A stretch of 64,000 bases of DNA from Basidiobolus meristosporus CBS 931.73 (taxonomy: Eukaryota; Fungi; Basidiobolomycota): positions 124,001-188,000 of the forward strand of contig MCFE01000002.1 in assembly GCA_002104905.1 (NCBI GenBank), in the 5' to 3' direction. Under the pieces are notes generated by a model that searched no databases, had not been told where the DNA came from, and saw only the letters and a list, made by a program, of their open reading frames with translations. Below, in pieces: positions 10,197 through 43,200 of this stretch. Numbering within the stretch: the stretch's first letter is position 1; each line of letters opens with the position of its first letter. The position numbers and the translations under genes are program-made.

Positions 10197-11751
<1,555 letters not shown>

Positions 11752-16772: not shown

Positions 16773-17893
16773 TGTCACTCTCTACAATATCTACTAATGC
16801 TATTACTATAACTTTTCCCTCCACTGAAAAGTTGGATGGATCCAACTACCAACTGTGGAAGGTGAAGATCAAGATGCTGCTACCAGAAAGAGGCCTTTGG
16901 GATAGTGTCATGGGAGAGAAATTCCCTCCTAAAAGTGTGGGAGAGGAAGCCTTAAAGTACCAGAATAAAGAACAAAGTGCCTTTAACTGCAATTGCCTTC
17001 ATATCAAAGACAAATCACTAATTCAATGGTCAAGAGCAAAACTGCAAAGAATGCCTGGAAGGCATTGGAAGACACCTACCAGTCATGCTCAGCTGCTGAA
17101 AAAATGTATCTGAGACAAAAATTACTTACTACAAAGATGCTGCCAGCCAAAGAAATGAAAAATCTAATCAAAAGTACTACCCTGCTTGTGCATGCAATGG
17201 AATCTATGCACATACTAGCTGCTGATGAGGATGTGATAGTTACCATCCTGAATAGCCTGACAGACAAGTCTTGGGGTTTCCTATTGGCTCTAGATTCCAG
17301 AACTGAAGATTTGACCTTGAATTAAGCACATAGAAGGCTGCTGGATGAAGAATTAAGAAAGTCAAGTGCCAATAAGAAAGAAGAAGAAAACCCTCTAATA
17401 AGCAATGCTAACCAACAAAGGAGGTATCCAAGACCCTTTAAAGGCAAAAGCAATCTGTTGTGCAACTACTGCAAAAGGAAAGGACACAAATCAAATTAGT
17501 GCCTCAAAAAGAGAGATAGCCAGCTGAAAAAGCCTGAATATGTAAATGCTGCAGCAACTAATGATAGAATATTCATATCTGCACCAAATATGACCAAAAA
17601 CAAGGATTTTTAGACATAGCATATTGACTCTAGAGCATCCCAACACTTCACACACAAAGAGTACTATTTACCCAATACCAAGAAATTCTAATCAAGAAGG
17701 TTTCATGGGTGATGACAGAACACTTGATGCAGTTAGAGAAGATATTATCCAAGTAAACCTTAGAAGTAGTGAAGAAAGCTACACACCTACCTTCAAAGAG
17801 GTACTCTATGTTCTAGAAATAGCCAAGAACCTACTATCTGTAAGCTGTTGTAAGAGTCTTAGAGATATCAGAAGTGATTGGGAGAACAAGTTG

Positions 17894-19739
17894 CCCTATG
17901 AAAAATAACTTGATCCCTCAGGTAGATCCAATCCAGATCAGCCATCATAATCCCATCAGGAGACTGTAATAGTACCAGCAGCTTGGAGTTAATTACCCTC
18001 TACATGATTTTATGACAGGATCATAACAGCAATTGGCCAATTTTATAGCCAAATATAGTAAAAACATTACAGTACTTAGGTAGTGTTTTGCTGGGGGTGA
18101 TATGGCATTGTTGTAGTCTTGGTGCACTCTACAACTATTTGAGTGGATCTAACCAGCTAGTATGACCAATTACCTTATATGGCAAAAAACTTGATGGTGT
18201 TTTGACAGCCTCATTGCAAGCCTCTAATGGAGTTATTATGGCATTGAAGTGGCCTACAGCTAGATCTGTATAATGCTACTGTACTAATTTACCAAATGGT
18301 ATTTCCTTTGTCTACCTCCCCTTATGCAATTCATATATTCCACCATAGAATCACCCCTTTTTATTTGCTTACCCACTACTACCTTGGGTAATCCACATAT
18401 AGTTCAAATTAAGATAAACTATGATCTCCTGTTTACTAACCTCTACATATGTGCACACCTGCCACACTTTGCATACTTCTATCACCTCAACTTTATGGCT
18501 TTTTAGTGTGATACTTGCAGAGTAGCCATATACCTTGTATTGCTAGCAACATATACGTCTTGAAAACATATGCTTGGTTGCCACTACTTCTGCCATGAAT
18601 ACCACCTGATTATCCACAAAGAATATTGTAGTATTTAGCCAATATATTCCTTATCCCTGCTGGATTCTAGTCCCCCTTGCAGGTATGCTTTGGCTCTTGT
18701 TTATGTGAATTCCATATTGAATGGTGTGGAAATTGGCTTGTGACCAAGAGAAACCCAGCACACTTTGGCAGAGTTTGCTTAATAAAAATTATTTGCTTGT
18801 TGTACCCTAACCAACTTTACATTACTTAACTGATTACCCACACATTGGGGCTACTTAGCTTTGTAATTCCATAGGCATAGGTGTCTCCATGTGCACATCT
18901 GTCCGCATAATTTTCCAACTCTTCCTGGCTGTTCTCCACATGCCAATTCATCACATACATGACAGACTTGAAGGTGATATTCTTGATGAGATTGGGATAT
19001 GGTAGTAGTTGCAACTTTATTTATCTTCATATCTCCCCACACATCCACTCTATAGAAAACTCCCAAAAGGTGGAGCAAGGCTCAATATTCTCCACACCAA
19101 GCAAGATGGAGTAGGGAATGGATACAGTAGTGGCAGAGATCTATGCATTCAGCTGCATGTTTGTAGTATAGCCACTTAAATCCCATCACAAACTCCATGC
19201 ACAAAAGCTGTAGATGTGTCAAGTTGGCATTAGTGATCCACTTCTGGATAAATATTCCTACAATTCCCACATATGACTCCCAATGCATCCAGTGAACTCT
19301 TGGAAGAAATGGCATCAGAAGGCCACTTGAATAAGTACATATCCAGCTCATCCAGTACTTGCACCTGTATAGTTTCATATGCATACAAATGTTGATTGGA
19401 GCCTGTGAGAAGTACTTAAGGTAGCAGATACTCTGTACTATCTTGCCAATTCTTTAAATTTTGCCAGTACCTTGAAGGGCTCATTCAGCTTGATATGCCT
19501 AACTTACAATATGGCCGTCAATATAGGTATATTGTTGAATAGCAAATGCATTGCTCCCAGTGGAAAGCTTTTGCTCCAACAGATACCCTTTATATTCCAT
19601 ATCTCTGGTTTCAGATTAATTCCATACTTTAGCCAATGGCTTATAGCTTGCCAGCTTTGCTGTAATTGCATGCTGACTTCTGTATGTTCTCTTTGCAGGA
19701 AAATGATGTTTGTAGTGTTAGTATTTGGGTAATAATAGT
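17894..19739 (-). mobile_element. CACTA/EnSpm family: transposase-side end plus C-terminal Tnp2 transposase remnant
   Basis: TIR CCCTATGAAAAATAA then the subterminal CCCTCAGGTAGATCC block. Minus-strand NANLTHLQLL...CHYCIHSLLHLAWCGEY...PYPNLIKNI resembles the fungal Tnp2 transposase C-terminus. Confidence 0.8.
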
Positions 19740-21532
19740 CCCTAGGAAAAGTTATTGTAATGATCCCATCAAAAGGCCATCACAAAGTTAAAGTCCTGTG
19801 ATTAAGAGGTACTGATCCTGTTAAGACACTGTCCAGAGACCTTTGAAAAATAATTTCACCCCAGATTTCACAAAAAACTTAGTCAAAATTTTTCATCACA
19901 ATGATGTATAAGTGGCTTTTGATCAGTTCCCTGCCAATTTGCTCACTTTCTGATCCTAGACACTCTATCACCTCCTACATTTGTGTGCATTGATTGGCTA
20001 TTGCCTCCTTTTCACACTCCTTACTTCCTAATTCAACCATTTCTCTTACTTTTCATGCGTACAAATTGATTTATTTCCATTGTATTGACATAGTTAAGTC
20101 CCTATACCCTGCATTAACATTAAGCCCAATCTACACTCAACAGGTAACTCCATTAAAATGCACAACTTAATAAGTATTTCTGCTATAATGCTCCAGTTCC
20201 ACAACTTTGGTGGGAGCCCAACAGCTTTATGCCACTGTTCATTCATTGGTGCCCACGCATCCTGGTCTTCAGCCAGCAATGCAAGGTCTAGCACCTCATC
20301 TGCCAGTCTTTGCAATATATCCTTGCAATATTCAAGTGCATTTTCTTGAGCACTGCTCTTGAAGAAGTGCAGCAACCTCTTGGTGTGCCTATTGATTTTC
20401 CAAAGTTCCACTGAAGGCATTGTGATAGTCTTTTGAGCTCTTGATGTTGCAGCCTTCTCTGTCAGTGGGATCTCCACTCTGTCAACAATGGTGGATGTGG
20501 AGGCTGTGGTAGACAAATTGCATTTTTCTGCAAACTAAATTACCTTTCTGAAGTGTAGCTCAACTGGCTGTGCTTCCAACTCTTATGAAAACAGATGTTT
20601 TATTGTTGGTAATTCTTCTTGGCTATGATGGGATTCAGTCTGTTCCTGGCTTGTGGTGTTAATTGGCATGAACTGCAGTTTCTTTTGCATACCTCCCTGT
20701 CTCAGGCTTGGGTAGACATTTTTCCCTTTACCTTTTCTTTTATCACTGCCAAGTCTTTCAGTGATGCTTTGTCTGAGTGCTTCTTGTAATCAACTTCATT
20801 TTCTCCTTGCTAAATTCTGCTCTGATGCATCTGTTTTGGCCTGCTTGTCCCTTGCTGGCACTCTTCTGGGAACCTGATGTTTCTTTTTTGCTTGTTTTGA
20901 GCTCTCAACTGTAGTTGTGATGGGCACCTGCAAAAGCCACTGGTTTCATCACTGTCAGGTTCTTCACTGCTACTTTGACTAAGTGCTTCTTGAGTGGTAC
21001 TAAGCTTTTTCCTTGATAAATGTTGCACTGGTGCATCTGTGTCAGCCTGCTTGTCCCTAATTGGGACTCTTCCAGCTACCTGACATCTCTTTGATGCTTG
21101 TCTGGAGCTTTTGGCCCCGCTTGTAACAGGCTGTTGAGGATGCTGCTAGTTTTTAGCCATGACACCCTTGTTCTTCTGCCTTTGACAGTTTCTGCTATTC
21201 TTATACTACTTTCTTAGCATACCAATGCTGGCCCAAAATGTGCTTGCCAGTTTGAATCCAGGATACTGCTCATGGAACAAGTCAAGTGCATTCTGCTTGG
21301 CCTTGAGTTCTGGATTATCCCATAGTGTGCCAGCCCTAAGGTGACATAGCTTTTTTTTGATTTAAACTATATGTGAAATACCCAAGGTAGTAGAGGGTAA
21401 GCAAATAAAGAAGGGTGATTCTACAGTGCAATATATTAATTGCACAAGGGGAGGTAGAAAAAGGAAGTACTATTTGGTAAATTGGTATGGTAGCATTATA
21501 CAAAACCAACTGTAGGCCACCATACTGCCAAT
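19740..21532 (-). mobile_element. Internally deleted CACTA copy: ORF2-side TIR, ORF2 3' part, then transposase-side subterminal sequence
   Basis: Begins CCCTAGGAAAAGTTATTGTAATGATCCC (ORF2-side end). ORF2 remnant HFFKSSAQENALEYCKDILQRLADEVLDLA matches the copies at 33-35 kb and 60-62 kb. Confidence 0.75.
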
Positions 21533-21688
21533 AGACTTGTTCCATTGGATAGTGCCACATAGTGCCAGATCTATCTGGCACTATTGGGCACTATAATTTC
21601 TACCATCATGCCAGTGGTAGGATATAGTTACTGGTAGTTTTACTCATTCTTACTAATATTGCTCAGAGTTGTGCTTTCCTTGCTTTAT

Positions 21689-22572
21689 TTACTCTTCATA
21701 ATGCTCTAGGCACATTACTCTTAGTGGATGTCTTCTTGTATGAATATACTGTGCATTGGTAAGTATCTTAACTATTTTACCTATTTGGCTGTTTTCTCCT
21801 ATATATGACTTTCCTCTGTATTTACCTGCCAATATGCTGAATCTCTTCAGATATCCAAATGTATGCTCTACCCTCACTCTAAAATGATTGAATATTTCAC
21901 TCTAGAGCTTCTGCTTCCTGCTAAGCACACCATTCCTTGGCTTCCTATAAGCTGTAATACATCCTAATCTCTGACAATCCTCTCCTATATAAGCTAAGTC
22001 TGCCATACATTTCTCCCCTCTACTGAATACTGGATGATTCTCTACCCAGAGTGCTTTGTCATGCCTACTTTGTGTGAATGGCCCACTAAACCAGATGATG
22101 TTACCCTCAATGTCAGACAGTGCTTGAAACTTCACACAGTGTACCTTGTACTTGCCAGAATAAAAGTGCCTCTGCACTCTAGAAGGTCTGTTAGTCCTGA
22201 CTGGGAAGGTATCCAAAATACTCCTCATATGCAACCAGCTGCTGAACACTCTGGGATATGGAAGTCTATTGAAGCTACTGAACCTAGTACTCCAAACTTG
22301 CTCCAAGTCATTCATACACTCTGCAAGGTTGTTCTCCATTGCTGTCAGCTGGGAATGAAAGCTTCTAGGACTTTTGTTGCCATGTATAGTGGGATGAAAC
22401 CTTGTAGGGCAATGGTTCTTGTAATAGCAGAGAAGCTTAACAAGGGATCTCCTTGAGTAGATTGGGGTAGATGGACTACAGTTCTTGGTATAGATCTCCT
22501 CTAGTGTGTCAAAAGGAAATCCAGTGGTAGTGATGTGATTGATGAAAAAGACCATTCAGATGTGTAAGTCAT
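21689..22572 (-). pseudogene. DDE_Tnp_4-type transposase, inactivated
   Basis: Closely similar to the ORF at 58756-59640, with TAC>TAG at 21902-21904 and a 1-nt deletion near the start. Confidence 0.88.
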
Positions 22573-23018
22573 ATTAAAATTGGTAAGGATTAGGCTGAGA
22601 TGATTTGATTTGGTGTGATCAGCGTTATTTATCTGATTTCCCATGCATTATAATCAAATCTCCATCAATTGCCATGTATGGCATCATTATGTTGCAAAAA
22701 TTATCCTCAAAAAATGACTGGGTATTTTTATTGATGTTTTACTCACAGGTCTATAATCAAATAGGAAATCTGCAATTGATGTGATTGGATCCGTGTCAAT
22801 GCAATCCATGATGCATCATGCATAATATATGGAAAATTCAACAATCACATTAGTTTTCATATATATTTCATATAAGACCAGGTTGATGCCAATACACCAC
22901 TGTATAAGTATCCAAATCCCTCACTATAATCACTATACCAAGTCTCAACTCATCTTTAGTTCAACCCAGACAAAACCCATCCCCCAGCTCACAAGCATGG
23001 TCAGGACCAGAACAGGCA

Positions 23019-23619
23019 ATGTCAGATCCATTTGAGTTCTTGCCAAATGATTTCAGTATGGCCTTAGTGTCTATGATGAGCATTCATACAGATATTTGGG
23101 CACTACTCATTAATCAAGCCAAACCAGATACCTTGGAGAGTCAACAGAGCTAGAAGAACCTGAGTAGAAAGCTGTGGCAGGAGTTCTACATCAAGATGCC
23201 AGCATATGTATGTAAAAAGATATATAACAAGACAAGTATTGAAATCAAGAATGAGCTGAGAGTGAGGGGATTTGATAAGAAAGCCACGTGGGAACAATTT
23301 TGTGCACAATCTGCTCAGTACGGGCTGGATGCGTCCATTTGTGCCTCAACTATGGGAACCAAAGAGATTTAGAATGAGTTTTTGCCTCAAATGACTAATG
23401 TATTACATGATATATTAGTAGAGCTAAGTGGCTTCCAAGAGCAATATACACAGGACTCATCCAGGCAACAGTTGCAAAGTATTAGACAGAGGGTAAGTGA
23501 ATACCTTGAGGAATCAGAAGGTGAGCTTCAAGAGCCAGAATACGGACCACAAGCAACATTGTCTAAATTGCACCAGGATGCCTTGCTGGATTTCTTACCA
23601 TCCCTAGCAACTTCAGCGT
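23019..23619 (+). pseudogene. PHIS accessory gene, 5' part, cut by the LTR insertion
   Basis: MSDPFEFLPNDF...RKLWQEFYIKMP and ELRVRGFDKKATWEQFCAQ...EYLEESEGEL match the reverse complement of 57700-58303. Confidence 0.65.
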
Positions 23620-24423
23620 TGTGGTGGTGTAGAGGTACTCCTGGGAGAAGCTACACAACTCAAGGTGTGTGAGGTGTCTGATGGGTGCAATAACCTCTGT
23701 GTCTAAACTGCTGGTGTCTTTGTCAATATGTCACTATGGTAAAAGCTCCTGCTTCTTTAGCTCCCTAGGTGCTCCAAGTGTCTCCAAAGGCCTCTGTGTG
23801 TCTTGTGCACTACCCTGAAAAGCTCCTTGATGGCAGGTCTTAGATGTACTGTTGAAGGCAGGTGCAGTGATCAACTGCTAATCAATAAGGTAGAAGTGTT
23901 ACTGATAGAAGGGATGATTTATTGATGAGGGATTGCTTTCCCTTAAATACTTTTCCTGATTGCCAAGTGATTACTAATGACAAGGTTCTAGAAGATTCTA
24001 GGTATCAGTGGAATTCTTGATGACATCACTATGAGCTAAAAATATGCTAAGAATGTCCTGGAAGGTTCTAAAAGGCACAGCACTCTCAACCAATCAGGAA
24101 TCAGTAGTCTGAAACCTGTGCAACATAGAAATACCATATATGGTATTGAAATGGTAGGGATGGTAACACAGACCTAGGTCATGTGTCACGGGTACTGACG
24201 CGGGTACTTGCCTTATATAGATACATCTACTGATCACAAAGCTAAATAACATCTGGGATAACTAATGCTAATAACTAATCAGGGTAAACATCATATGGGG
24301 ATAATACTGATAATATGGGCAAAAGAAGAATGGGATAATACTGATAAGATAAAATATGGATAAGTATATCATAATGACTATATGAATAAACTTGTCTGTG
24401 GGAGGTATGTTTACCCTACCACA
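23620..24423 (-). repeat. LTR 1 of the array (804 bp)
   Basis: TGTGGT...ACCACA inverted termini. On the minus strand it is preceded by the PPT AAGTGGGGGGTGGA (24424-24437). Confidence 0.93.
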
Positions 24424-24501
24424 TCCACCCCCCACTTGAGCTAAAAAGTTTCAGGGAACTTTTTAGCTAACCACTGTAAGTTTGGAGAACAAAGTGCTCT
24501 C

Positions 24502-26358
24502 TCAGTCTTCCTCAATGAAGCCACCTGTCCTTTCTTGAGATAGAAATCTACATGATGTCATTGATCGGATATTGTTTGAGTCCACACCACAGAAGGTTGC
24601 TGTTAGTCCTGGGCTCTCTGAGTATATAGTATACCATGCTGAACCATCTGGGTAGTTCACTGCAGTTGCTCTTGCTTTTACTTCCCATGGTCTTCCAAGA
24701 AGTAATTCAAAGTTAGCCTTTGCACAAATGAATACTGGGATCTCATGGGGTATTCCTTCAATGATGAGAGGGAAGCTGTGAATAATTCCTAAAAGCTTTG
24801 ATTGCCCTGAGTTGGCATCCTTCATGCTCCAATTGATATTGGTGTCTATGGGCAATAGGTCTTTGCATGGTAGTGGTTTCCAAGCCTCCAAAGGCATCAC
24901 ACATATCTCAGATCCACTGTCTATATGACATAGGATTTCTTGATTATGCACAGTTCCTGTAGTTGTTGCAGTTGCCACTGAGTAGTAGTGTTTCTGGCTT
25001 TGATGCAGCTTACTGATATCTTGGCTTCCTTGAACTGTCCTGACCTGGCTGCCTTGAGTTGCTTCAATTGGATGCTTTCTTATTCTGATATGCTCATCCA
25101 GAGTCTTTCTTACAGATGGTGATACACTGAGTAGCTCTCCAACCTTGATTGATATGTTGCTTCCTAGTATATGACTTGTCAGAGCCTCTGGGGTACCATT
25201 TTGCTTGACTTTAGGCTGCATGTGGTAGTTGTTGGTCTTGGCAGACTCTTGTAGAATTAATGGGGGTGATGCTTTCTTCTCAATCACAACTTCTGGCTCA
25301 CATCTTGGTACTTTTGTTGCTGGGCCTAGATTAGCCATTTTTTCAGGATGGTGTCTCTTTGAAGCATAAATTGAAGCTATATGATCTTGGGCCTCTCTGG
25401 GGTCCTCATAGTCAAAGTTCAGAACTTCAGCTGGATCAAAGTAGTCAGGATCTTCTTCTTCATGGAGGTGAACCTTTCTTGTATGAGAGGTGACTTGCTT
25501 GTAGTGAACTCTCATTCCTCCTTGTCCAAATGCTGTGGATAATTTGTCACCATGCTTACTGACTATGTATCCCTGAGGACTATATAGGACATCACCTGTG
25601 GATAGTAATGACTGAAGCTCTTGGCAATTTCTTTTGGAATGGTTGGCAGAGTCACACCACATGCATGTATATTTGACTTCTTTCTCTACTGGCTTCTGAC
25701 CATATGCTTTGCTGGCAAGTAGCAAAGAGAGTTTCTCTAGTTGCTGTGTCAGCTCCTGAATTTGAGTGCTTTGATTGCTGGGATTAAGTATGTCTTGGCT
25801 ATCTTGGTTTTGTTCTGGGCTTGAAAGAAGCTTTCTGATTGGTGAGGTTTCTTCAGGGGCAAGTAGAATCTGCTTGGCTAACTGAAATGCAGGCAGTGAA
25901 CTCATAGCTTTCACAGTAGGATTGTTTTCAATCCTTCTCACCAGGCCTTCTGGTAGTGCTCTGAGCAGATAGGCAGATAAAGTCAGATCAGTGATAATGC
26001 CTTGGGCTTTCAGTGACTCTCCAATTTGCTCAAGGCCACTCAAGTATTCTTTCAATGGTAGCAGCTTAAACTTGCTATAAGCAAAGTTCTCCAAGTCTTT
26101 AAGTGTGTAGTCAACTTGTCTCTCTCCATATTCATCAATCAAGTAGCTCTTCAAGAGGGTCCAATTTGTCAGCAGATCATTTCTTTCATATAAAGAGAGC
26201 ATGATCTCATCAGTGCTGTAGGGGGGCATCTCTTCAGCCATAATGGCCTCAGGTATTTTGTGGGCTCTGCAGAAAAGCTCCCACCTCTTGATGAAAGCTT
26301 TAACTTTGGTTCCATCAAAGAAAGGAGTTCCTTGCATTCCTGGTAAAGGTAGATCCAT
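24502..26358 (-). CDS. Uninterrupted 618-aa Ty3/gypsy-type Gag-aspartic protease polyprotein
   Basis: FDGTKVKAFIKRWE capsid start, CMWCDSANHSKRNC (CX2CX4HX4C) knuckle, ELLSVSP motif, protease CHIDSGSEICVM and ELLLGRPW. The stop lies about 65 bp before the PPT. Confidence 0.92.
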   Translation of the reverse strand: MDLPLPGMQGTPFFDGTKVKAFIKRWELFCRAHKIPEAIMAEEMPPYSTDEIMLSLYERNDLLTNWTLLKSYLIDEYGERQVDYTLKDLENFAYSKFKLLPLKEYLSGLEQIGESLKAQGIITDLTLSAYLLRALPEGLVRRIENNPTVKAMSSLPAFQLAKQILLAPEETSPIRKLLSSPEQNQDSQDILNPSNQSTQIQELTQQLEKLSLLLASKAYGQKPVEKEVKYTCMWCDSANHSKRNCQELQSLLSTGDVLYSPQGYIVSKHGDKLSTAFGQGGMRVHYKQVTSHTRKVHLHEEEDPDYFDPAEVLNFDYEDPREAQDHIASIYASKRHHPEKMANLGPATKVPRCEPEVVIEKKASPPLILQESAKTNNYHMQPKVKQNGTPEALTSHILGSNISIKVGELLSVSPSVRKTLDEHIRIRKHPIEATQGSQVRTVQGSQDISKLHQSQKHYYSVATATTTGTVHNQEILCHIDSGSEICVMPLEAWKPLPCKDLLPIDTNINWSMKDANSGQSKLLGIIHSFPLIIEGIPHEIPVFICAKANFELLLGRPWEVKARATAVNYPDGSAWYTIYSESPGLTATFCGVDSNNIRSMTSCRFLSQERTGGFIEED

Positions 26359-26410
26359 GGTCTTGATAATTTGTTCTTTCTTAAGTCTTCTAGGGGCAGT
26401 TCAGTCAAAC

Positions 26411-26428
26411 CCCCCACGTTGGGTGCCA
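26411..26428 (-). promoter_or_regulatory. Primer-binding site, tRNA-Lys(CUU) type
   Basis: TGGCACCCAACGTGGGGG versus the canonical Lys1,2 PBS TGGCGCCCAACGTGGGGC, located 4 nt after the LTR end. The second unit has a more decayed copy at ~29225-29243. Confidence 0.85.
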
Positions 26429-26432
26429 AATA

Positions 26433-27237
26433 TGTGGTGGTGTAGAGGTACTCCTGGGAGAAGCTACACAACTCAAGGTGTGTGAGGTGTCTGATGGGTG
26501 CAATAACCTCTGTGTCTAAACTGCTGGTGTCTTTGTCAATATGTCACTATGGTAAAAGCTCCTGCTTCTTTAGCTTCCTAGGTGCTCCAAGTGTCTCCAA
26601 AGGCCTCTGTGTGTCTTGTGCACTACCCTGAAAAGCTCCTTGATGGCAGGTCTTAGATGTACTGTTGAAGGCAGGTGCAGTGATCAACTGCTAATCAATA
26701 AGGTAGAAGTGTTACTGATAGAAGGGATGATTTATTGATGAGGGATTGCTTTCCCTTAAATACTTTTCCTGATTGCCAAGTGATTACTAATGACAAGGTT
26801 CTAGAAGATTCTAGGTATCAGTGGAATTCTTGATGACATCACTATGAGCTAAAAATATGCCTAAGAATGCCCTGGAAGGTTCTAAAAGGCACAGCACTCT
26901 CAACCAATCAGGAATCAGTAGTCTGAAACCTGTGCAACATAGAAATACCATATATGGTATTGAAATGGTAGGGATGGTAACACAGACCTAGGTCATGTGT
27001 CACGGGTACTGACGCGGGTACTTGCCTTATATAGATACATCTACTGATCACAAAGCTGAATAACATCTGGGATAACTAATGCTAATAACTAATCAGGGTA
27101 AACATCATATGGGGATAATACTGATAATATGGGCAAAAGAAGAATGGGATAATACTGATAAGATAAAATATGGATAAGTATATCATAATGACTATATGAA
27201 TAAACTTGTCTGTGGGAGGTATGTTTACCCTACCACA
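26433..27237 (-). repeat. Shared central LTR 2 (805 bp)
   Basis: Has a PPT on one side and a PBS on the other, so it acts as the 3' LTR of one unit and the 5' LTR of the next. Confidence 0.93.
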
Positions 27238-27314
27238 TCCACCCCCCACTTGAGCTAAAAGTTTCAGGGAACTTTTTAGCTAACCACTGTAAGTTTGGAG
27301 AACAAAGTGCTCTC

Positions 27315-29172
27315 TCAGTCTTCCTCAATGAAGCCACCTGTCCTTTCTTGAGATAGAAATCTACATGATGTCATTGATCGGATATTGTTTGAGTCCACAC
27401 CACAGAAGGTTGCTGTTAGTCCTGGGCTCTCTGAGTATATAGTATACCATGCTGAACCATCTGGGTAGTTCACTGCAGTTGCTCTTGCTTTTACTTCCCA
27501 TGGTCTTCCAAGAAGTAATTCAAAGTTAGCCTTTGCACAAATGAATACTGGGATCTCATGGGGTATTCCTTCAATGATGAGAGGGAAGCTGTGAATAGTT
27601 CCTAAAAGCTTTGATTGCCCTGAGTTGGCATCCTTCATGCTCCAATTGATATTGGTGTCTATGGGCAATAGGTCTTTGCATGGTAGTTGTTTCCAAGCCT
27701 CCAAAGGCATCACACATATCTCAGATCCACTGTCTATATGACATAGGATTTCTTGATTATGCACAGTTCCTGTAGTTGTTGCAGTTGCCACTGAGTAGTA
27801 GTGTTTCTGGCTTTGATGCAGCTTACTGATATCTTGGCTTCCTTGAACTGTCCTGACCTGGTTGCCTTGAGTTGCTTCAATTGGATGCTTTCTTATTCTG
27901 ATATGCTCATCCAGAGTCTTTCTTACAGATGGTGATACACTGAGTAGCTCTCCAACCTTGATTGATATGTTGCTTCCTAGTATATGACTTGTCAGAGCCT
28001 CTGGGGTACCATTTTGCTTGACTCTAGGCTCCATGTGGTAGTTGTTGGCCTTGGCAGACTCTTGTAAAATTGATGGGGGTGATGCTTTCTTCTCAATCAC
28101 AACTTCTGGCTCACATCTTGGTACTTTTGTTGCTGGGCCTGGATTAGCCATTTTTTCAGGATGGTGTCTCTTTGAAGCATAAATTGAAGCTATATGATCT
28201 TGGGCCTCTCTGGGGTCCTCATAGTCAAAGTTCAGAACTTCAGCTGGATCAAAGTAGTCAGGATCTTCTTCTTCATGGAGGTGAACCTTTCTTGTATGAG
28301 AGGTGACTTGCTTGTAGTGAACTCTCATTCCTCCTTGTCCAAATGCTGTGGATAATTTGTCACCATGCTTACTGACTATGTATCCCTGAGGACTATATAG
28401 GACATCACCTGTGGATAGTAATGACTGAAGCTCTTGGCAATTTCTCTTGGAATGGTTGGCAGAGTCACACCACATGCATGTATATTTGACTTCTTTCTCT
28501 ACTGGCTTCTGACCATATGCTTTGCTGGCAAGTAGCAAAGAGAGTTTCTCTAAGTTGCTGTGTCAGCTCCTGAATTTGAGTGCTTTGATTGCTGGGATTA
28601 AGTATGTCTTGGCTATCTTAGTTTTGTTCTGGGCTTGAAAGAAGCTTTCTGATTGGTGAGGTTTCTTCAGGGGCAAGTAGAATCTGCTTAGCTAACTGAA
28701 ATGCAGGCAGTGAACTCATAGCTTTCACAGTAGGATTGTTTTCAATCCTTCTCACCAGGCCTTCTGGTAGTGCTCTGAGCAGATAGGCAGATAAAGTCAG
28801 ACCAGTGATAATGCCTTGGGCTTTCAGTGACTCTCCAATTTGCTCAAGGCCACTCAAGTATTCTTTCATTGGTAGCAGCTTAAACTTGCTATAAGCAAAG
28901 TTCTCCAAGTCTTGAAGTGTGTAATCAACTTGTCTCTCTCCATATTCATCAATCAAGTAGCTCTTCAAGAGGGTCCAATTTGTCAGCAGGTCATTTCTTT
29001 CACTATAATGAGAGCATGATCTCATCAGTGCTGTAGGGGGGCATCTCTTCAGCCATAATGGCCTCAGGTATTTTGTGGGCTCTGCAGAAAAGCTCCCACC
29101 TCCTGATGAAAGCTTTGACTTTAGTTCCATCAAAGAAAGGGGTTCCTTGCATTCCTGGTAAAGGTAGATCCA
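27315..29172 (-). pseudogene. Second Gag-protease copy, inactivated
   Basis: Nearly identical to unit 1 but with indels near 29000 and 28551 and CAA>TAA at ~28618. Confidence 0.9.
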
Positions 29173-29247
29173 TGGTCTTGATAATTTGTTCTTTCTTAAG
29201 TCTTCTAGGGGCAGTTCAGTCAAACCCCCCATGTTGGATGCCAAATA

Positions 29248-30051
29248 TGTGGTGGTGTAGAGGTACTCCTGGGAGAAGCTATACAACTCAAGGTGTGTGA
29301 GGTGTCTGATGGGTGCAATAACCTCTGTGTCTAAACTGCTGGTGTCTTTGTCAATATGTCACTATGGTAAAAGCTCCTGCTTCTCTAGCTTCCTAGGTGC
29401 TCCAAGTGTCTCCAAAGGCCTCTGTGTGTCTTGTGCACTACCCTGAAAAGCTCCTTGATGGCAGGTCTGAGATGTACTGTTGAAGGCAGGTGCAGTGATC
29501 AACTGCTAATCAATAAGGTAGAAGTGTTACTGACAGAAGGGATGATTTATTGATAAGGGATTGCTTTTCCTTAAATACTTTTCCTGATTGCCAAGTGATC
29601 ACTAATGACAAAGTTCTGGAAGTTTCTAGGTATCAGTGGAATTCTTGATGACATCACTCTGAGCTAAAAATATGCCAAGAATGTCCTGGAAGGTTCTAAA
29701 AGGCACAGCACTCTCAACCAATCAGGAATCAGTAGTCTGAAACCTGTGCAACATAGAAATACCATTTATGGTATTGAAATGGTAGGGATGGTAACACAGA
29801 CCTAGGTCATGTGTCACGGGTACTGACGCAGGTACTTGCCTTATATAGATACATCTACTGATCACAAAGCTGAATAACATCTGGGATAACTAATGCTAAT
29901 AACTAATCAGGGTAAACATCATATGGGGATAATACTGATAATATGGGCAAAAGAAGAATGTGATAATACTGATAAGACAAAATATGGATAAGTATATCAT
30001 AATGACTATATGAATAAACTTGTCTGTGGGAGGTATGTTTACCCTACCACA
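29248..30051 (-). repeat. LTR 3 of the array (804 bp)
   Basis: Same termini and sequence as LTRs 1 and 2, with a few more substitutions. Confidence 0.93.
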
Positions 30052-30282
30052 GCGCGGGTACTTGCCTAATATAGAACCACTTACCAATAGTAATCTTACA
30101 TACAGTGAGGGATAACTTATGCAATAAGCTAAGAAGGTGTGATAGTCAACCGGCTTATGGGATAGTACTGATCAGGTAAGACAAATGGGATAAAACTAAA
30201 ATCAATGTAGTAGAGATATAGGGAAGTAGAAAATATGGGAATGAGCACATCTGTCAGTGGGTGTCACTGTGACCCCACTACA
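30052..30282 (-). repeat. Fragment of a related but distinct LTR
   Basis: Starts GCGCGGGTACTTGCCTAATATAGA, similar to GACGCGGGTACTTGCCTTATATAGA in the array LTR, and ends ACCCCACTACA (TG start on the minus strand). Confidence 0.6.
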
Positions 30283-30673
30283 ATGGTAGCATTATACAGA
30301 ACCAGCAGTAGGCCATCATACTGCCAATATAATGCCATTAGAATCTTGCTGTGAGGTCATCATAATACCATCCAGTTTCTTGCCATATAAGGCAATTGGA
30401 TGTCCTGGCAAACTGGATCCACTTAAAATAATTATAGAGCCCTAAAAGACCGCAAAAATACCATGCAAATATCATCACAGCACCAATAAAATATTGATAA
30501 GTTTTATCCCTTTATTTGGTTGTAAATTAGCAAAACACCTTCATGATCCTGTCATAAGATTGTTATGAGGGTCACTAATTCCAAGCTACTGGTATTATGA
30601 TGGTCTCTAAACAGGATCTTGATGGCGGTTCCGGATTGGATCCACCTGCTGGACCAAACTATTACTCATAGGG
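30283..30673. mobile_element. CACTA transposase-side end (subterminal block plus TIR)
   Basis: Reverse complement reads CCCTATGAGTAATAGTTTGGTCCAGCAGGTGGATCC, matching the ends at 17894, 45607 and 55274. Confidence 0.8.
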
Positions 30674-33600
30674 CTTATCTCATTGTGTGTTGGGATTTTG
30701 CTGGGCTCTTGCAGGGTACTGTTGTTAGGGGAGATGGGCTCATAATCCATCAGCAAGCCTTCCTCTTCAGAGCTATTAATCAGCATGCCATATTTGGAAG
30801 GTGAGCCTAAAGGTGTCACAAACTCACCTGACACAGTTTGTCCAAGGTGACAAGTACAGCTAGGTGCCATTATAGAAGTATCAGATGGCCAGTAAGAAAT
30901 TGTTAGTACTGTAGTTACCAATGAATAGTCAAATATTACTTGTGTGGCAAAACACTGGCCATGATCCTTGTGCTACTTGCTACATTGTCTACATGCTGCG
31001 TGGCTGAGAAGTTTTCTACAATAGCCACACGGTCTTTCTTCTCTTCTCTTATGAGGCTGAATCAAAGTAGTCTTCTCCATGAGGCAACAGTTTAACACCC
31101 AACAACACAACACTCCCTATGAAAAATCTCAAGCTTGGAATTCATCTGATTCTCAGCTGATATTCTGCTGGTATGCTAATGGTATTTTGCTGATATTTGG
31201 CTGGTGTTTTTGGCTCAAAATCTCAGATGCAATTTTTGATGGAAGTAATGGGCAGCTAATTACCAAATACAGTATGGATGCAAGTTGGCCTAGTCTCCTC
31301 CTGAAGAACTTGTTTGCTTGCACTCACATTGGTTAACAACAGAGATATTGGAAGTTGTCAATTTTGAGAAACTTGGAATTCAGCAGATACTATGATGACA
31401 TTTTGCTGGTCCTTTCTTAATTTTTTTTCTTAGGTACAATTATGTCACATTTTTGTCAATACTCATGAATTAAAGACAGTTTTGTCTTTGAGGCATTGCA
31501 CCTACATGAATGTAAAATTCAGTGATGACCTGCCATAGAAAGAATTATAAATGAGGTTATGGCACTACATACACATGGATATGTACACTATTTCACTTTG
31601 GTTTCACTCACTTCCATATTTATGGTGCCAAAAAATAAAGCAAAGTTGTCTGGTTCTCAACCAAACCCCATAGTTGACAGTAGCAGAAGAACAGCTAGAC
31701 AGTAGCTTGCTATGACATTCAGTATAACAACCAGGGCTACATCCAAAAAAGGCTGTGTTAACAGCTCACCCACTGAAGGTAGTAATGCAGACCCCTCAGG
31801 CCCTCAGTCAAGCAGGCAAATGAGAGTCTCTGTGGAGCTGCAAGCTGTCCATAATGCTCAGGCAGATGAAATGTAATATGTGCAGTACCTTTGGTTGAAG
31901 ACCAGCAAGTGGCTGTCATAACATCACCCGCATCTGTACTAATAAGTATGTTGTCAACTCACACAAAAGCATTTATGATGCAATTACATATAGTGGCAGA
32001 TAACATTGATGCAATGGCCCAGAGAGACCAGAAAATAGCTCAGAAGCAGGATGAGCAGATATCACATACAGAGCTATCAATATCCCAGGTAGAGAACAAA
32101 GTATGTTTACTGCAAAGATGGAATTCAAATAGTTCAATGTTACAGCCAAGAATTGAGCTGTTTCCCAATGTAAAACCAGAGGAGCACCATACAGTCTTTT
32201 AGGCACAACAACAGTGCTCAAAGATTAAACCTACAGAAAAACCTACTGCAACATGGGATGGGGAAACTGTGGTGTGTATGCCCAAGCCTAAAAGTCAAGA
32301 GACATTGAAAATGTATGAAGTTGCTAGGTGCAATGATGAAGCAAGGGCTAATATTTAAGAGATTGTCAGAGGTCTAGCATGGGATCATCTAAAGGCCAGC
32401 ATACCATGGGTCCATCAGGACTCAAGGCCACACTGATTGCGCTTGACCTGGTAAATGAGCATTATCCTGGACTCAAGTAGGCAAATAGAGTTTAAGCCAG
32501 CATGGGTATGCTACAAAAGCATTGCAAGAGTAGATGAATATTTCAAAGGTGGAAGTGCAAGGGTGCCATGGCTAAAAGCTTGTGGCTTCCTCAAGAGCTT
32601 GTCAAAAGCCAGGCTAAAGCTCCAAACAAGTGGCAAAGAAACAATAGGTAGCCAGAAGAGTGCTAGTAAGGGACAGAGAAGCAGTAACAGATTCATCAGT
32701 GTAGCATTTATCAAGGAGAAAACAGAGTTCAATACTAGAAGCACTTGGTCATTGTAGCAGCAAAGGACTTGACAGTGATAAAAGCCAGCAGATTTCACAG
32801 GAGCCCATCTTAAGCAGGGCTGATAGTTCCAAGTAAGCAGCAAACAAGTGTCAGGTTGCAGGGAGAGTGCCAGCTGTCAATAAGCAGGCAATTGCAGATC
32901 CACAAGTGCAGCATTCATCAGGCAGAAGACAGCGTACAACACAACAAGCATTCAGTCAAAGCAGCAGTGAACAACCTGGCAGTGATAAAGGTAAAGGTAA
33001 AGAGAAAGAGGTCTAAACAAGTCAGAGACAAGGAAGCATGAGAAAGAAGCTGCAGCTCTCACCAACAAATGCTGTCAGCCTATAAGAGGTGGAGTCCCAT
33101 CATTGCTAAGAAGAATTACCAACAAGACAGCTGCTGTTTTCTCAGGAGTTGAAAGTGCAGCTGGTTGAGCTACTCTCCAGGGATATAGGTGAGCATGCAG
33201 AGAAAAGCAGTTTGTCTACTACTGCCCCCATGTCCCCCATTGTAGACAGAGTGGAGATCCCAGTGAAAGACAAAGCAACATCATCAAGAACTCAAAAGAC
33301 TATCACAATGCCTACAGGGGAATTTGGAACATCAAGAGATTGCAGCACTTCTTCAAGAGCAGTGCTCAAGAAAATGCACTTGAATATTACATAGAGCTAT
33401 TGCAAGGAGTGGCAGATGAGGTGCTAGACCTTGCAGTGCTGGCTGAAGACCAGGACATATGGGAACCAGTGAAAAAAATGTGCCATCAAGCCAGAGTGTT
33501 CCCACCAGAGTCATGGAAAAAGGGTGTTACAGTAGAAATACTGCTTGTATGGTGAATTTTGATGGAGTAACTTGTTGAGTGTGGGGTTAGACATAATGTT

Positions 33601-33999
33601 AGTGCTTGGTATAGGAACCTGCTTAGGTCAATACAATTGGCAATTGAGTTACAACAAAAGTTTCTATGGAAACAAATCAATACATATGAGTGAAAAGTAC
33701 AAGAATTGGTTGACTCAGGAAGCAAGGAGTGTGAAAAAGAGGCAATAGCCAGTCAATGTACACAAATGCTGGAGGCAATTGAGTGTCTGGGATCCAAAAG
33801 TGAGAGAATTAGCAGAGAACCAATCAAAAGTTGCTTATGTATTGTTTTAATGATAACTTGGGACCAGGTTTTTTGTGAAATCTGGGATGCAATTGTTCTT
33901 CAACAGTCTTTGTACAGTGTCCAGACAGGATCAATAGTCATAGGACTATAAATTTGTGATGGCCTTGTGATGGGATCATCACAATTATTTTTCATAGGG
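30674..33999. mobile_element. CACTA fragment: transposase N-terminus (minus), divergent ORF2 (plus), ORF2-side TIR
   Basis: Same head-to-head junction as at 53 kb and 62.7 kb. Ends ...TTATTTTTCATAGGG. Confidence 0.75.
31115..31435. mobile_element. Possible ~320-bp MITE with CACTA-type TIRs
   Basis: Insertion absent from the other CACTA copies. Ends CCCTATGAAAAA and TTTTTCTTAGGT. No clean TSD. Confidence 0.4.
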
Positions 34000-34086: not shown

Positions 34087-34115
34087 AGACTTGTTCCGTT
34101 GGATAGTGCCACATT
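34087..34115. repeat. Isolated PHIS terminal fragment
   Basis: ATT|AGACTTGTTCCGTTGGATAGTGCCACA matches the transposase-side end of the PHIS family. Confidence 0.7.
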
Positions 34116-35137
34116 GAGCCATGAGGGAAAATGTCTACTTAGGCCTGAGACAGGAAAGCTTACCAAAAAACTGCAGTCCTTGCCAATTAACACTGTGAGC
34201 CTGGAACAGACTGAATATCATCATTTGCCAAGAAAATTACCAACAAGAAAGCAGCTGCTTTCACAAGAGTTGGAAGTGCAGGCAGCTAAGCTACAATCCA
34301 GCAAGGTAGACAAGCTTGCAGAGAAAGGCAATCTGTCTACCGCAGTCTCTGTGTCCTCAATTGTTGACAGAGTGGGGACCCCAATGACAGACAAGGCTAC
34401 AATTTCAAGAACTCAAAAGCCTATCACATCACCTTTGGCAGAATTTTGGAACATTAATAGGCATACCAAGAGGTTGCAGCACTTCTTCAAGAGCAGTGCT
34501 CAAGAAAAAGAACTCAAATATTACAAGTATATATTGCAAAAACCAGCAGGTGAGGTGCTTGACCTTCCAGTACCGGCTGAACATCAGGATGTGTGGGAAT
34601 CAGTGAATGAACAATGGCACAAAGCCGGTGGGTTTCTGCCAGAGCTATAGAAGTAGAGCATTACCGCAGAAATTCATATGAGTAATGGATTTTACTGGAG
34701 TTTCTTGTTGATTGTTGTGTTAGGCTTAGTGTTAGTATAGGTTAGAGGGACTTGTAAAGGACAATACAATTGGAAATTGAGTAACAACTCAAGTTTCAAT
34801 GGAAATAGATCAATTTAAACTCATAAAAAGTAAGAGAAAGGTTGAGTCAGGAAGTAAGGAGTGTGAAAAGTGGCAGTTGCCTATCAATATACACAAACAT
34901 AGGAGGTGGGTGAGTGTCAGGGATCAGAGAGTGAGCAAATTGACATCAAACCAATGAAAAGTCACTAGTATATTGTTGAGATCAAAAATTTTGACTAAAT
35001 ATTTTGTTAAATTTGGGGCGCAATTATTTTTCAATGACCTCTGGATAGTGTCCTGGTGGGATCAGTACTTCATAGTTGCAGGACTTCAAATTTGTGACAG
35101 TCTTTTGATGGGATCATTGCAATAATTTTTTGTAGGG
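34116..35137 (+). mobile_element. CACTA ORF2 3' part plus ORF2-side TIR, additional copy
   Basis: Repeats 33000-33999 with divergence and ends ATAATTTTTTGTAGGG. Confidence 0.75.
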
Positions 35138-39161: not shown

Positions 39162-40292
39162 ATGTCGGACAATCAAGAATGGAAGAATGCCATGCAGCAA
39201 ATCCTGGCCCAACAGCAACAGCTACTCCAGATCCTCAGCCAACAGCAACAAGGAATGACTACCATGGCTCAGAGCCAGCAAAGCCCTGTCAAGAGCAACT
39301 TTAGTGTGAAGGTCAACCAGTACCATGGCAGAGTCAATGAAAACCTGGGAACTTGGCTCTTTCAGATTGAAGAAGCTTTTAAAGCTAAAGGAATTGCTCC
39401 AGAGAGCAAGTTGCGTTATGCAGCTTCTTACCTGGCAGATGCAGCTTTACAGTGGTACCACAACAAGATCAGGTCCGCCACCATGATGGGATGCTCTACA
39501 ATCTCTACCTGGGATGAGTTTGTGTCGGAAATTCAGGATGCTTTTGAACCTCCACACCAGCAGACACTACTAAGAAGGAAGTTAAAGACACTCAGACAGA
39601 AAGGAATGGTGCAAGAATACATCTATGAGTACAGATGTCTACTTGGACAAATTGAAAGAATGGACCCCTTGGATCAAGTTGAATACTTTATTGATGGGTT
39701 GAAAGAAAGAACTTGCAAGGAAGTCAATTACCAAAGACCTCAGACTATTGAAGAAGCCATCAAGATTGCCATTGACTATGACTCAGCTATGTTTGGAGTT
39801 GGGAAGCCTACAGTGACTAATCAGAAAGGCTATAATCATTATGAAAGAAGACAATCAGAAGCAGTACCAATGGAAATAGACGCTATGCAGAAGAATCCCT
39901 CCTCAGAAGAATGCAAGAAGAGAGGACTTTACTCCAATTGCCACCAGCAGGGACATATTGCAAAGTACTGCCCTCAGAGTAGAAATGGACACCAGCCAAC
40001 AAGAACCTTCAACCATATTGAGTCCCATGAACACAGTAATGTGGAAGATGAGCTTGAAGAAGACTTGGAACTCACCTTCCATATGACAGAAGAGTACTTG
40101 TCCCAAATGACTTCAAACTCAGGGAAGTTACTGTACTTGAATGGAGTAATCAATGGAGTACCTGCCAAGATCATGATTGACTCAGGAGCATCGCCTGAGT
40201 ACATGTCAGAGCAATTTGCTTTGAAAGGTGGAATAACTTGGAACCTACCAAATCAACTTCAGTTTCTACAGCTGATGGGAACTCCCACATAA
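39162..40292 (+). CDS. Gypsy gag plus start of protease
   Basis: [15 protein letters not shown] capsid, PMEID motif, decayed knuckle [14 protein letters not shown], protease IDSGA. A 1-nt deletion relative to copy 2 (GINLEP) breaks the frame at ~40238. Confidence 0.88.
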
Positions 40293-43200
40293 TCAACCGT
40301 ATTACCCAGCCAATAAGAATGAAGATCAATGACTATGAAGAAGACCTACAGACTTATATATTTGGGAACTGCAAGTTTGACCTTGTACTTGGAAAAACCT
40401 GGCTATTTTGTCGTAATCCATCTATCAACTGGAGAACCCATGCTACTCAGATCCAAAAATACAACAAGACCTATGAGCTATTACCCGCCAGGCTGGATTT
40501 CAACTTGGTCAATTCCAGTGTGTGTGAGACAAGTGAGCTTAGCAAGACCCAGTTCTGTAGAGCACTTAGAAAAGGTACCAAGATGTTCCACATGGTGGTA
40601 TTACAGGAGGATTCCTCTACCCCAGCACCCCAGCAGGTCCAGACTCTCTTGAAGAAATATTCAGACGTGTTTCCAGATGAGCTTGTAAGTCTACCACCAG
40701 TCAGAGACGTGGATCATGCCATTGACACAGGAGATAGCCCTCCAGTGAGCAAGACACCTTACAGAATGAGTCCATTGGAATTGGAGGAAATGAAGAGACA
40801 AATTGATCAGCTATTGGAGCAAGGATACATCAGGCCCAGCAAGTCACCTTGGGGAGCACCAGTGCTTTTTGTGAAAAAGAAGGATGGAACACTCAGGATG
40901 TGCATTGACTACAGAGTCCTGAACTCAGTTACCATCAAGAATAAGTACCCCATACCTTGGATTGATGAGCTTTTAGACCAACTTAATGGAGCCACTATTT
41001 TCAGCAAGATTGACCTCATGTCAGGATACAACCAGATTAGGTTGAAACCAGAAGATATCCCTAAGACAGCATTCAGGACCAGATATGGACATTACAAGTA
41101 CTTAGTCATGAGTTTTGGCCTCACCAATGCCCCTGCAACATTCATGACGCTGATACAGACTGTCTTTCAGGAGTACTTAGACAAGTTTGTGATAATCTAC
41201 CTGGATGACATATTGATATACAGCAAGACAGAAGAGGATCACGTAGTGCACATTAAAAAGGTCTTGAAGAAACTAAGAGAGAACAAGCTATATAGCAAGC
41301 TAGCCAAGTGTGAATTCTTCAAGGAGCATGTTGAATACCTGGGACACATAGTGACTAGCACAGGAGTAACTTTAGACCCTAAGAAGGTTGAAGTGATCAA
41401 GAATCTGAAGCAGCCCCATAGCATATCAGAGCTCAGATCATTCCTTGGAATGGTTTCCTATTATTAGAGATTTATCAAGTCTTCCAGATGCTCAAGAATG
41501 AACTTGCTAAGCTGCCAAGCTTAAGAATACCTGACTTCAGAAAAGAGTATACTCTGTGCACAGATGCTTCACATTATGCAATTGGTGGAGTGTTGAGCCA
41601 AAAACACAAGGGAAAGGACTACCCCATTGCCTTTGAATCCAAGAAACTGAACTCAGCAGAACAAAACTATCCAGTGCATGAGAAGGAGATGCTTGCTATA
41701 ATACACTGTTTGAAGACAAGGAGATGCTATATTGAAGGAGTCAAATGCACTGTCAAGACTGATCATGCCAATTATCGGAGATTTGTCAAGTCTTTTGCAA
41801 GTATTTCAGCCCCTTTAACTGATATCCTCAAGAAAGACAATACCTACAAGTGGGACATAGCTTGTGAGACTGCCTTCCAGACGCTCAAGAATGAACTTGC
41901 TAAGCTGCCAAGCCCAAGAATACCAGACTTCAGAAAAGAGTTCACTCTGTGCACAGATGCTTCAGATTATGCAATTGGTGGAGTACTGAGCCAAGAACAC
42001 AAGGGAAAGGACTACCCTGTTGCCTTTGAATCCAAGAAACTGAACTCAGCAGAACAAAACTATCCAGTCCATGAGAAGGAGATGCTTGCTATAATACACT
42101 GTTTCAAGACATGGAGATGCTATATTGAAGGAGTCAAATGCACTGTGAAGACTGATCATGCCTCCCTCAAGTATATATTTACTCAGAAGGTACTCTCTAG
42201 AAGAATGACAAGATGGAGTGAATACATTCAGCAATTTGACCTGGAGATTGTCTACTGTCCTGGAAAAAACAATATGGTAGCTGATGCCTTATCAAGATTA
42301 GATCAAGTTGCACAACTCAACTTGGTGCATGAATCAGATTGGCCTAGCCTATTACTAAAGTATTTGGAGGACCAAGCCATTCCTAATGAGGTGGATGAAG
42401 ATATCAAGAAGATAATCCGTGATGAAGCCAGCAAATTTGTTGTACAGAATGAAACACTCTACCGAATTGTTGATGGAAGCCCTATTGCCTATTGTCCTTA
42501 TGTTGCTTGCCTGGATTTAATACATAAGCTACACAATGGATATGGACATCTTGGGATTAAAGGAACCTATAGCCTTGTGAAAGCCAGAGCATGGTGGCCC
42601 AGAATGAGACAAGACATTGAGAAGCTAGTAAAAACACGCCCAAACTGCCAAATCAATCAAGGCCAGCCACAAAGAATTGCCAAGCTCTTCCCTTTGGAGC
42701 CTGTAAGACCATTTGAGAGATGGGGAATTGACTTTGTTGGAAGACTACCAACTACCAGGAAATGCAACCGCTGGATCCTAGTAGCTATTGACCATGCCAC
42801 TAAATGGCCAGTTGCCAAAGCTGTACCAATAGCCAGTGAACAAGAAGTTGCAAGTTTCATCTACCATGAGATCCTGATGAAGTTTGGATGCCCTGTGGAG
42901 ATCTTATCCAATAGAGGTGCAAACTTTATGGCAAAGACATTAGAAGCTTACCTGGAAATGCAGCAGATCAGACACTTGAAAACCTCGGCATATCACCCCA
43001 GAACTAATGGAGTCACTGAGCGGTTTAGTGGATTATTTGGAAAAATACTGACCAAGTATGCAAATGGAGTTGTCAGTAGATGGGTTGAGTATATAGACCA
43101 AGCACTCTTTGCATGCAGAGTCAGAGTACACAACACCACCCAGCAATTGCCATTTTACTTAGTTTATGGATGTGAACCAAGAATTCCAGGAGATCTCACA

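Follow-up and report, generated by a model that had tools for sequence, protein, structure and literature searches.

A tandem LTR retroelement array in Basidiobolus meristosporus that codes for Gag and protease and lacks reverse transcriptase, RNase H and integrase

This report concerns a tandemly repeated long terminal repeat (LTR) retroelement on contig MCFE01000002.1 of the fungus Basidiobolus meristosporus CBS 931.73 (assembly GCA_002104905.1). The stretch of DNA analysed, hereafter the window, comprises 64,000 nucleotides (positions 124,001 to 188,000 of the contig). Within it, the element forms a three-LTR, two-body array in which one body carries an intact open reading frame (ORF) for Gag plus protease (PR), with no reverse transcriptase (RT), RNase H (RH) or integrase (IN). 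We put at roughly 55% the probability that the element is a non-autonomous, pol-less Ty3/gypsy derivative of the fungal "DUF4100" Gag-PR lineage, dependent on a helper and arrayed by recombination between family members.

Anatomy of the array and of its reading frame

Direct-repeat analysis of the window revealed a period of 2813-2815 nt across positions 23620 to approximately 30051, with units 98-99% identical, far above chance. The period equals the sum of one LTR and one body. The repeat lies on the minus strand (23620-30051) and reads LTR(804)-internal(2010)-LTR(805)-internal(2009)-LTR(804), head to tail; a single LTR-internal-LTR unit measures about 3.62 kb. The LTRs are 97.8-99.5% identical to one another and have short inverted ends (TGTGG...CCACA). 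The edges of the array coincide with these termini, as would be predicted for a series of bodies separated by shared LTRs rather than for an arbitrary duplication. Thus, the repeat analysis, the termini and the exact coordinates bear out the tandem order LTR, primer-binding site (PBS), gag, PR, polypurine tract (PPT), LTR that a preliminary description of this DNA had proposed. Neither TRF (period limit 500) nor Rfam gave matches in the window. The components, in 5′ to 3′ order of the element, are as follows.

29248..30051, minus strand: LTR_A, 804 nt, the most 5′ and most divergent LTR, with 16 unique changes
29227-29243: copy of the PBS in INT_1, with 2 mismatches, both transitions
27238..29247, minus strand: INT_1, 2010 nt, internal region with the dead Gag-PR copy
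26433..27237, minus strand: LTR_B, 805 nt, the shared middle LTR
27027-27033, minus strand: TATATAA box of LTR_B (LTR position 205-211)
26731-26736, minus strand: AATAAA of LTR_B (LTR position 502-507)
24424..26432, minus strand: INT_2, 2009 nt, internal region with the intact ORF
26412..26428, minus strand: primer-binding site TGGCACCCAACGTGGGG of INT_2, 4 nt past the LTR end
24424-24437 and 27238-27251, minus strand: polypurine tract AAGTGGGGGGTGGA, directly before LTR_C and LTR_B
23620..24423, minus strand: LTR_C, 804 nt, the most 3′ LTR, with 4 differences from LTR_B

The PBS sequence was found twice in the window, compared to 0.1 occurrences expected by chance. Together with one additional base, it agrees at 16 of 18 positions with the published PBS for mammalian tRNA-Lys1,2, the reference being mammalian and not a host tRNA; ARAGORN detected no tRNA genes in the window. 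Judging from this match, the site is of the Lys(CUU) type, and the earlier assignment to a lysine primer holds at the level of type. The accompanying statement that all cis signals are intact applies to unit 2 and fails for unit 1.

The ORF of INT_2 begins at an ATG in a good context, with no other upstream of it in the leader, and its product can be divided into the domains listed here.

24502..26358, minus strand: Gag-PR ORF, 618 aa, intact; ATG in ACCATGG context, TGA stop
25849..26358, minus strand: capsid-like all-helical domain, residues 1-170, from predicted structure and fold matches
25624..25665, minus strand: CCHC zinc knuckle C232-X2-C-X4-H-X4-C245, conserved in relatives
24559..24975, minus strand: retropepsin domain, residues ~462-600, from motifs (including LLLGRPW), homology and fold
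24913-24921, minus strand: protease active site D480-S-G, from its motif

Pfam searches with the whole ORF and with each half yielded only DUF4100 (4e-5) and Asp_protease (0.05), neither of which reached its curated cut-off, and a search of the PDB by sequence returned nothing relevant. The AlphaFold model of the 618-aa product has a mean predicted local distance difference test (pLDDT) score of 77 and is confident at residues 1-170, 230-290 and 460-600. Its C-terminal domain matches the retropepsin fold of the DDI1 RVP domain and of HIV-1 PR (E 1e-7; template modelling (TM) score 0.77 on the target). When the N-terminal 185 residues were modelled alone, pLDDT rose to 89 and the best fold matches were the capsids of dArc1, PNMA2, Arc, Ty3 and copia. 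Together, motifs, distant homology and folds identify the nucleocapsid and protease portions firmly and the capsid portion with moderate confidence, in agreement with the initial view of an uninterrupted 618-aa frame coding for Gag plus protease only.

Relatives of the protein and absence of pol functions

An all-against-all HMMER search of 1.8 billion representatives recovered 641 relatives of the Gag-PR ORF, the best of them 24-30% identical; no ORF-wide orthologue above 30% identity was found there. The top named relatives belong to Smittium culicis, S. simulii and Furculomyces boomerangus, and further ones to Neolecta, Dimargaris and metagenome or Logan contigs. Three full-length relatives, P0011 (1656 aa), P0014 (1703 aa) and P0026 (1934 aa), are polyproteins encoded by one ORF each that run Gag-PR-RT-RNase H-integrase, the Ty3/gypsy order, and the whole 618-aa ORF is colinear with their first 580-650 residues. 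On the strength of this PR-RT-RH-IN order in its relatives, the lineage of the element is assigned to Ty3/gypsy, of which the element itself is not an autonomous member. An alignment of 42 relatives retains the CX2CX4HX4C knuckle, the glycine-rich block behind it and the protease motifs L-x-D-x-G-S-E and ILGRPW, D480 and G482 being nearly invariant; it contains no conserved stretch of 7-10 columns. A 95-aa protein of Basidiobolus ranarum is 40% identical to Gag residues 19-106, and thus the Gag lineage is present in the genus Basidiobolus.

Other searches were negative. A word-index protein search with the ORF gave no match, a result that is uninformative since the relatives of suitable length found by HMMER share no 5-mers with the ORF. 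The single Gag-PR protein, compared with metagenome, viral and prokaryotic genome contigs, identified no related locus, and the exact LTR-end/PBS pattern had no match in metagenome contigs.

The non-coding sequence of INT_2 amounts to some 150 nt, 74 nt ahead of the ATG and 78 nt past the stop, which leaves no room for RT, RNase H or integrase. Consistent with this geometry, tblastn comparison of the window with the RT, RH and IN sequences of the full-length relatives showed no match in or beside the array; the only matches fell within two other gypsy elements, at 40508-43521 (+) and 49038-51953 (-). The claim that no trace of these three functions remains was therefore upheld. A second argument, that the ORF ends cleanly before the PPT, has no weight as evidence, because any out-of-frame deletion junction meets a stop within a few codons. 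Homology to the relatives ceases at about residue 600, 15-30 codons before the stop at 619, and the tail is disordered in the model (pLDDT below 50 at residues 605-615).

A second frame past the protease (24447-24563, minus strand) runs for 38 codons without interruption and ends 10 nt short of the PPT. It was considered as a relic of the pol C-terminus and was not statistically significant.

Origin of the array and competing explanations

The two units are not uniformly diverged. When unit 1 was aligned with unit 2, 29 differences fell in the initial 1190 aligned nt, which take in the LTR and about 386 nt of the body, and 15 in the remaining 1626. Divergence drops from approximately 2.4% to 0.9% once about 390 nt of the internal region have been passed (Fisher 0.002; permutation 0.03 for the best-placed change point). 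In all, the copies differ at 44 positions, three indels included. LTR_B and LTR_C have two unique changes each, compared to the 16 of LTR_A (chi-square p 6e-5), and LTR_B is the same as LTR_C at every LTR_A-specific site.

These data bear on the possibility that a single LTR-internal-LTR element was mis-assembled as a tandem. Repeats of 2.8 kb in tandem are a classic trouble spot for assemblers; artefactual duplicates, however, are normally identical, unlike the 44 structured differences seen here, and collapsed alleles would not lie head to tail with exact sharing of an LTR. We regard an assembly artefact as the least probable of the explanations considered.

The sequences bordering the array were examined for signs of its insertion. 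No target-site duplication (TSD) of 4-6 bp was found: the flanks read ...CCGCGC and ACGCTG..., and the best agreement is 3 of 4 positions (CGCGC versus ACGCT). The two flanks derive from different repeats.

30053..30282, minus strand: 5′ flank, truncated diverged LTR comprising the first 225 nt of a related LTR, 64% identical to positions 1-225 of the array LTR
21578..23611, minus strand: 3′ flank, Harbinger/PIF-like copy (DDE_Tnp_4) abutting the array, 89.6% identical to 57712-59751 (+)

The truncated LTR breaks off exactly at the start of LTR_A and is preceded by a PPT-like sequence, GTAGTGGGG; no related coding sequence was found upstream of it. Insertion of the array into a Harbinger-like repeat was rejected, the 5′ flank being unlike the upstream sequence of the counterpart copy, with no similarity above shuffled controls.

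Given the change point, the non-hybrid character of LTR_B, the mismatched flanks and the missing TSD, neither a single tandem insertion nor a simple sister-chromatid exchange fits. The simplest reading of the sequence is that the array owes its origin to one or more ectopic exchanges involving two members of the family that were some 2.4% apart. On this view, LTR_A and the first ~390 nt of INT_1, contributed by a member diverged by about 2.4%, would have been joined to the rest when the LTRs or bodies of two or more members recombined homologously, rather than through one tandem insertion. Exchange between two members would imply that the LTR-gag module was multi-copy.

Part of this evidence was weighed against a simpler course of events, in which one autonomous insertion underwent an internal deletion in place and was then duplicated by unequal exchange, never transposing in its pol-less form. 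The junction is identical in both units, as in-place duplication predicts; there is no other copy in the window and no close relative in the protein or contig collections searched; and chance suffices for the intact ORF, which on this view would simply reflect young DNA. In-place duplication also predicts uniform divergence and a hybrid middle LTR, however, instead of which a change point, an LTR_C-like LTR_B, mismatched flanks and no TSD were seen. At least one exchange with another member, possibly the autonomous parent, is needed to account for them. Such a one-off dead derivative is a serious contender that we nevertheless judge less probable than the reading given at the outset.

The two coding sequences were also compared. 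INT_1 is dead: it has an additional G at 29003 and an additional T at 28553, and in codon 185 (28620) CAA has become TAA; its ORF is split into 28618-29286 and 27315-28538. The ORF copies differ by 9 synonymous and 13 non-synonymous changes, corresponding to a per-site ratio of non-synonymous to synonymous differences (pN/pS) of 0.40 over 22 sites and to a synonymous excess with a binomial p of 0.034. Codons 1-102, the divergent stretch, account for 6 synonymous and 3 non-synonymous changes; the 3 and 10 found afterwards are near the neutral expectation. This distribution suggests past coding constraint on gag in more than one lineage. In simulations, the probability that an ORF as long as this one is still open after 3-12 neutral events was 0.65-0.17, and thus the intact ORF provides no evidence of selection.

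A further explanation holds that the host has retained a Gag(-PR) protein whose action, like that of Ty1 p22 or Fv1, would be to interfere with an autonomous relative. A full-length Gag in an intact reading frame and the pN/pS of 0.40 would be in keeping with such a role. Yet the selection signal is limited to a stretch that looks to have come from a different copy of the element, and the sister unit, with its three disabling lesions, decays freely. The LTR, PBS and PPT mobility signals are all retained, the surroundings are a repeat graveyard with an observed/expected (O/E) CpG ratio of about 0.05, and the search that found no ORF-wide orthologue above 30% yielded from B. ranarum just the 40% identical fragment. 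All this makes host retention very unlikely.

The reading we favor, that of a helper-dependent, pol-less Ty3/gypsy derivative, can be phrased as a sequence of events. An internal deletion of about 3 kb would have removed all sequence between the PR-RT linker, itself included, and a point shortly ahead of the PPT, sparing the LTRs, the PBS, the PPT and a single ORF that codes for full Gag and a retropepsin whose catalytic motif is intact. Transcription would start past the TATA box of the unique 3′ (U3) region and end past the AATAAA in the LTR, and translation would produce Gag and PR in a 1:1 ratio, as in the single-ORF relatives. The Gag-PR particles would then assemble and be processed by PR, while tRNA-Lys-primed reverse transcription and integration would occur in trans, through co-assembly of the Gag-Pol of an autonomous relative with this Gag.

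Several observations weigh against this interpretation. The pol-less form was seen at this one locus only, and no solo LTRs, further copies or elements with related Gag, LTR or PBS occur elsewhere in the 64-kb window. The simulations make an intact ORF in one of two young copies a chance expectation, the synonymous excess in the divergent stretch concerns 9 sites only, and the capsid fold match is weak (E-values 0.02 at best, TM 0.46-0.57). Furthermore, the missing TSD could also be due to sequence lost or inserted at one flank afterwards, and the partner in the exchange could have been the autonomous parent and not another pol-less copy.

A broader proposal is put forward tentatively: that early-diverging fungi harbor a transposing LTR family encoding Gag plus protease only, selected for its own capsid and maturation protease and borrowing RT, RNase H and integrase from an autonomous Ty3/gypsy helper of the DUF4100 lineage. 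It is likewise conceivable, if rather doubtful, that such a family would constitute a "TR-GAG-PR" class, a parasite competing with its helper for packaging. Were dispersed copies sharing the junction to exist, element and helper would form a tractable pair for learning how a capsid-supplying defective element competes with, or dampens, its helper.

Sequence environment and comparison with known systems

The 2.8-kb unit contains 5 CpGs where about 124 would be expected. Three of the five fall within a GTACCCGCG block situated 11-23 nt past the TATATAA box, which is also kept in the neighboring diverged LTR (30054-30056).

27004-27016, 24190-24202 and 29818-29828: GTACCCGCG CpG block in the LTRs

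Another CpG lies in the PBS (26417-26418) and is lost in the dead unit; the last is in the ORF (24566-24567). This placement suggests that the surviving CpGs mark functionally constrained promoter and primer sites. Since depletion is common to both units, CpG loss predates the duplication. Presumably it reflects long residence under CpG-directed mutation by deamination of 5-methylcytosine. Across the window, CpG O/E is 0.01-0.12 in the repeat-rich 16-64 kb interval and 0.6-0.9 in the genic 1-14 kb interval, with TpG and CpA raised; this cliff looks like the outcome of repeat-targeted cytosine methylation and deamination. Unit 2 appears structurally competent from its sequence but is embedded in heavily CpG-depleted, probably methylated repeat DNA.

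Other features of the window were recorded. Approximately 3 kb from the start of the CpG-depleted compartment, an ORF of 302 aa (10843-11751, plus strand) encodes a Pre-SET/SET protein resembling the SUV39/Clr4 H3K9 methyltransferases; its identity to a partial protein of Basidiobolus ranarum is 82%, which marks the host as Basidiobolus-like, as against about 49% to proteins of Entomophthora, Massospora and Neoconidiobolus. The two Harbinger/PIF-like copies have DDE_Tnp_4 ORFs at 21902-22555 and 58756-59640. The gypsy elements at 39162-43605 (+) and 49038-51953 (-) encode a Retrotrans_gag/Ty3_capsid-type Gag, RT, RNase H and integrase, the former being split into three ORFs with two RNase H-like stretches. 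Both were rejected as parent or helper of the array, their Gag and PR showing no similarity to the ORF at E<1. An unclassified repeat of about 1.1 kb, which includes the D6/D7 direct repeats, occurs at 19740-20855, 32882-33999, 34125-35137 and 60353-61499 (75-84% identical); its ORF at 34099-34650 has no Pfam match. Finally, a dispersed repeat of about 0.4 kb (30286-30675, 17893-18279, 45624-45976 and 54969-55274; 68-71% identical) adjoins the truncated LTR.

The nearest points of comparison are the Ty3/gypsy polyproteins of Harpellales (Smittium culicis OMJ18467.1 and OMJ17852.1; Furculomyces PVU87237.1) and the metagenomic P0011, P0014 and P0026. They share the Gag-CCHC-DUF4100-PR layout of the element at 24-30% identity and differ from it in continuing into RT, RNase H and integrase. 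The main use of the present description is in the annotation of Basidiobolus-type genomes, in which this Gag-PR lineage is hardly visible to Pfam (DUF4100 at 4e-5).

Among pol-less elements, the TR-GAGs of plants (Chaparro et al. 2015, PMC4350172) are shorter than 4 kb, have LTRs, a PBS, a PPT and a single Gag ORF, and are presumed to be mobilised in trans. By definition they are Copia-related angiosperm families, multi-copy, with two or more dispersed copies and TSDs, and without an aspartic protease, although the C-terminus of TR-GAG1 has a faint protease-like similarity (PMC4350172). The Basidiobolus element likewise measures less than 4 kb and has LTRs, a PBS, a PPT and one Gag-bearing ORF, with no RT, RH or IN; in contrast to TR-GAG, it has a complete retropepsin (DSG), is Ty3/gypsy-related and fungal, and was seen at one locus only. 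The parallel with TR-GAG drawn in the preliminary description was therefore apt as regards a short LTR element with one Gag ORF and no pol, even though the protease places the element outside the TR-GAG definition. In the parasite-helper LTR pairs, BARE2 lacks Gag and borrows it from BARE1 (PMC4350172, PMC3248453). The present element resembles parasites of this type in being defective, in retaining its cis signals along with some of the coding functions, and in its presumed dependence on an autonomous relative; unlike BARE2, it keeps Gag and PR and would borrow RT, RH and IN.

Tandem arrays with shared LTRs are common, mostly with three LTRs, and commoner in gypsy elements (rice and other plants, PMC11899658; sugar beet, PMC13570524). 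Most plant arrays keep a TSD and are interpreted as one insertion each or as events within an element, whereas a minority without TSD is ascribed to ectopic recombination (PMC11899658, PMC13570524). The array described here has the usual three LTRs and two bodies; it departs from the majority in having no TSD and in being, on the favored reading, a mosaic of two diverged members. Unlike LARD and TRIM elements, which have no coding capacity between their LTRs, it contains an intact 618-aa ORF.

Expression of Gag, or of Gag and protease, without RT or IN is familiar from the restriction factors Ty1 p22 and Fv1 and from the domesticated Gag-PR genes PEG10 and RTL1, all of which are host genes, truncated or immobilised, on which selection acts at the level of the host. 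The element differs from these genes in that a full-length Gag-PR is surrounded by the full complement of retrotransposon cis signals, within decaying repeat DNA.

In fungal genomes, LTR elements with incomplete pol are the reported majority and parasite-helper pairs are frequent (PMC3248453). The suggestion that no fungal family of this form had been described stands insofar as the literature searched contained no named Gag-PR-only family, and was overstated in light of that majority (PMC3248453), of the commonness of tandem arrays sharing LTRs (PMC11899658, PMC13570524) and of the protease-like remnants of TR-GAG1 (PMC4350172). The element is a tidy example of a known defective, helper-dependent kind and not a new kind of system. 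As seen, it is a well-preserved case of two commonplace events, an internal deletion and the formation of a tandem through LTRs; should copies sharing this junction prove to be dispersed, the TR-GAG concept would reach beyond plants and Copia to fungi and Ty3/gypsy and would come to include a working protease.

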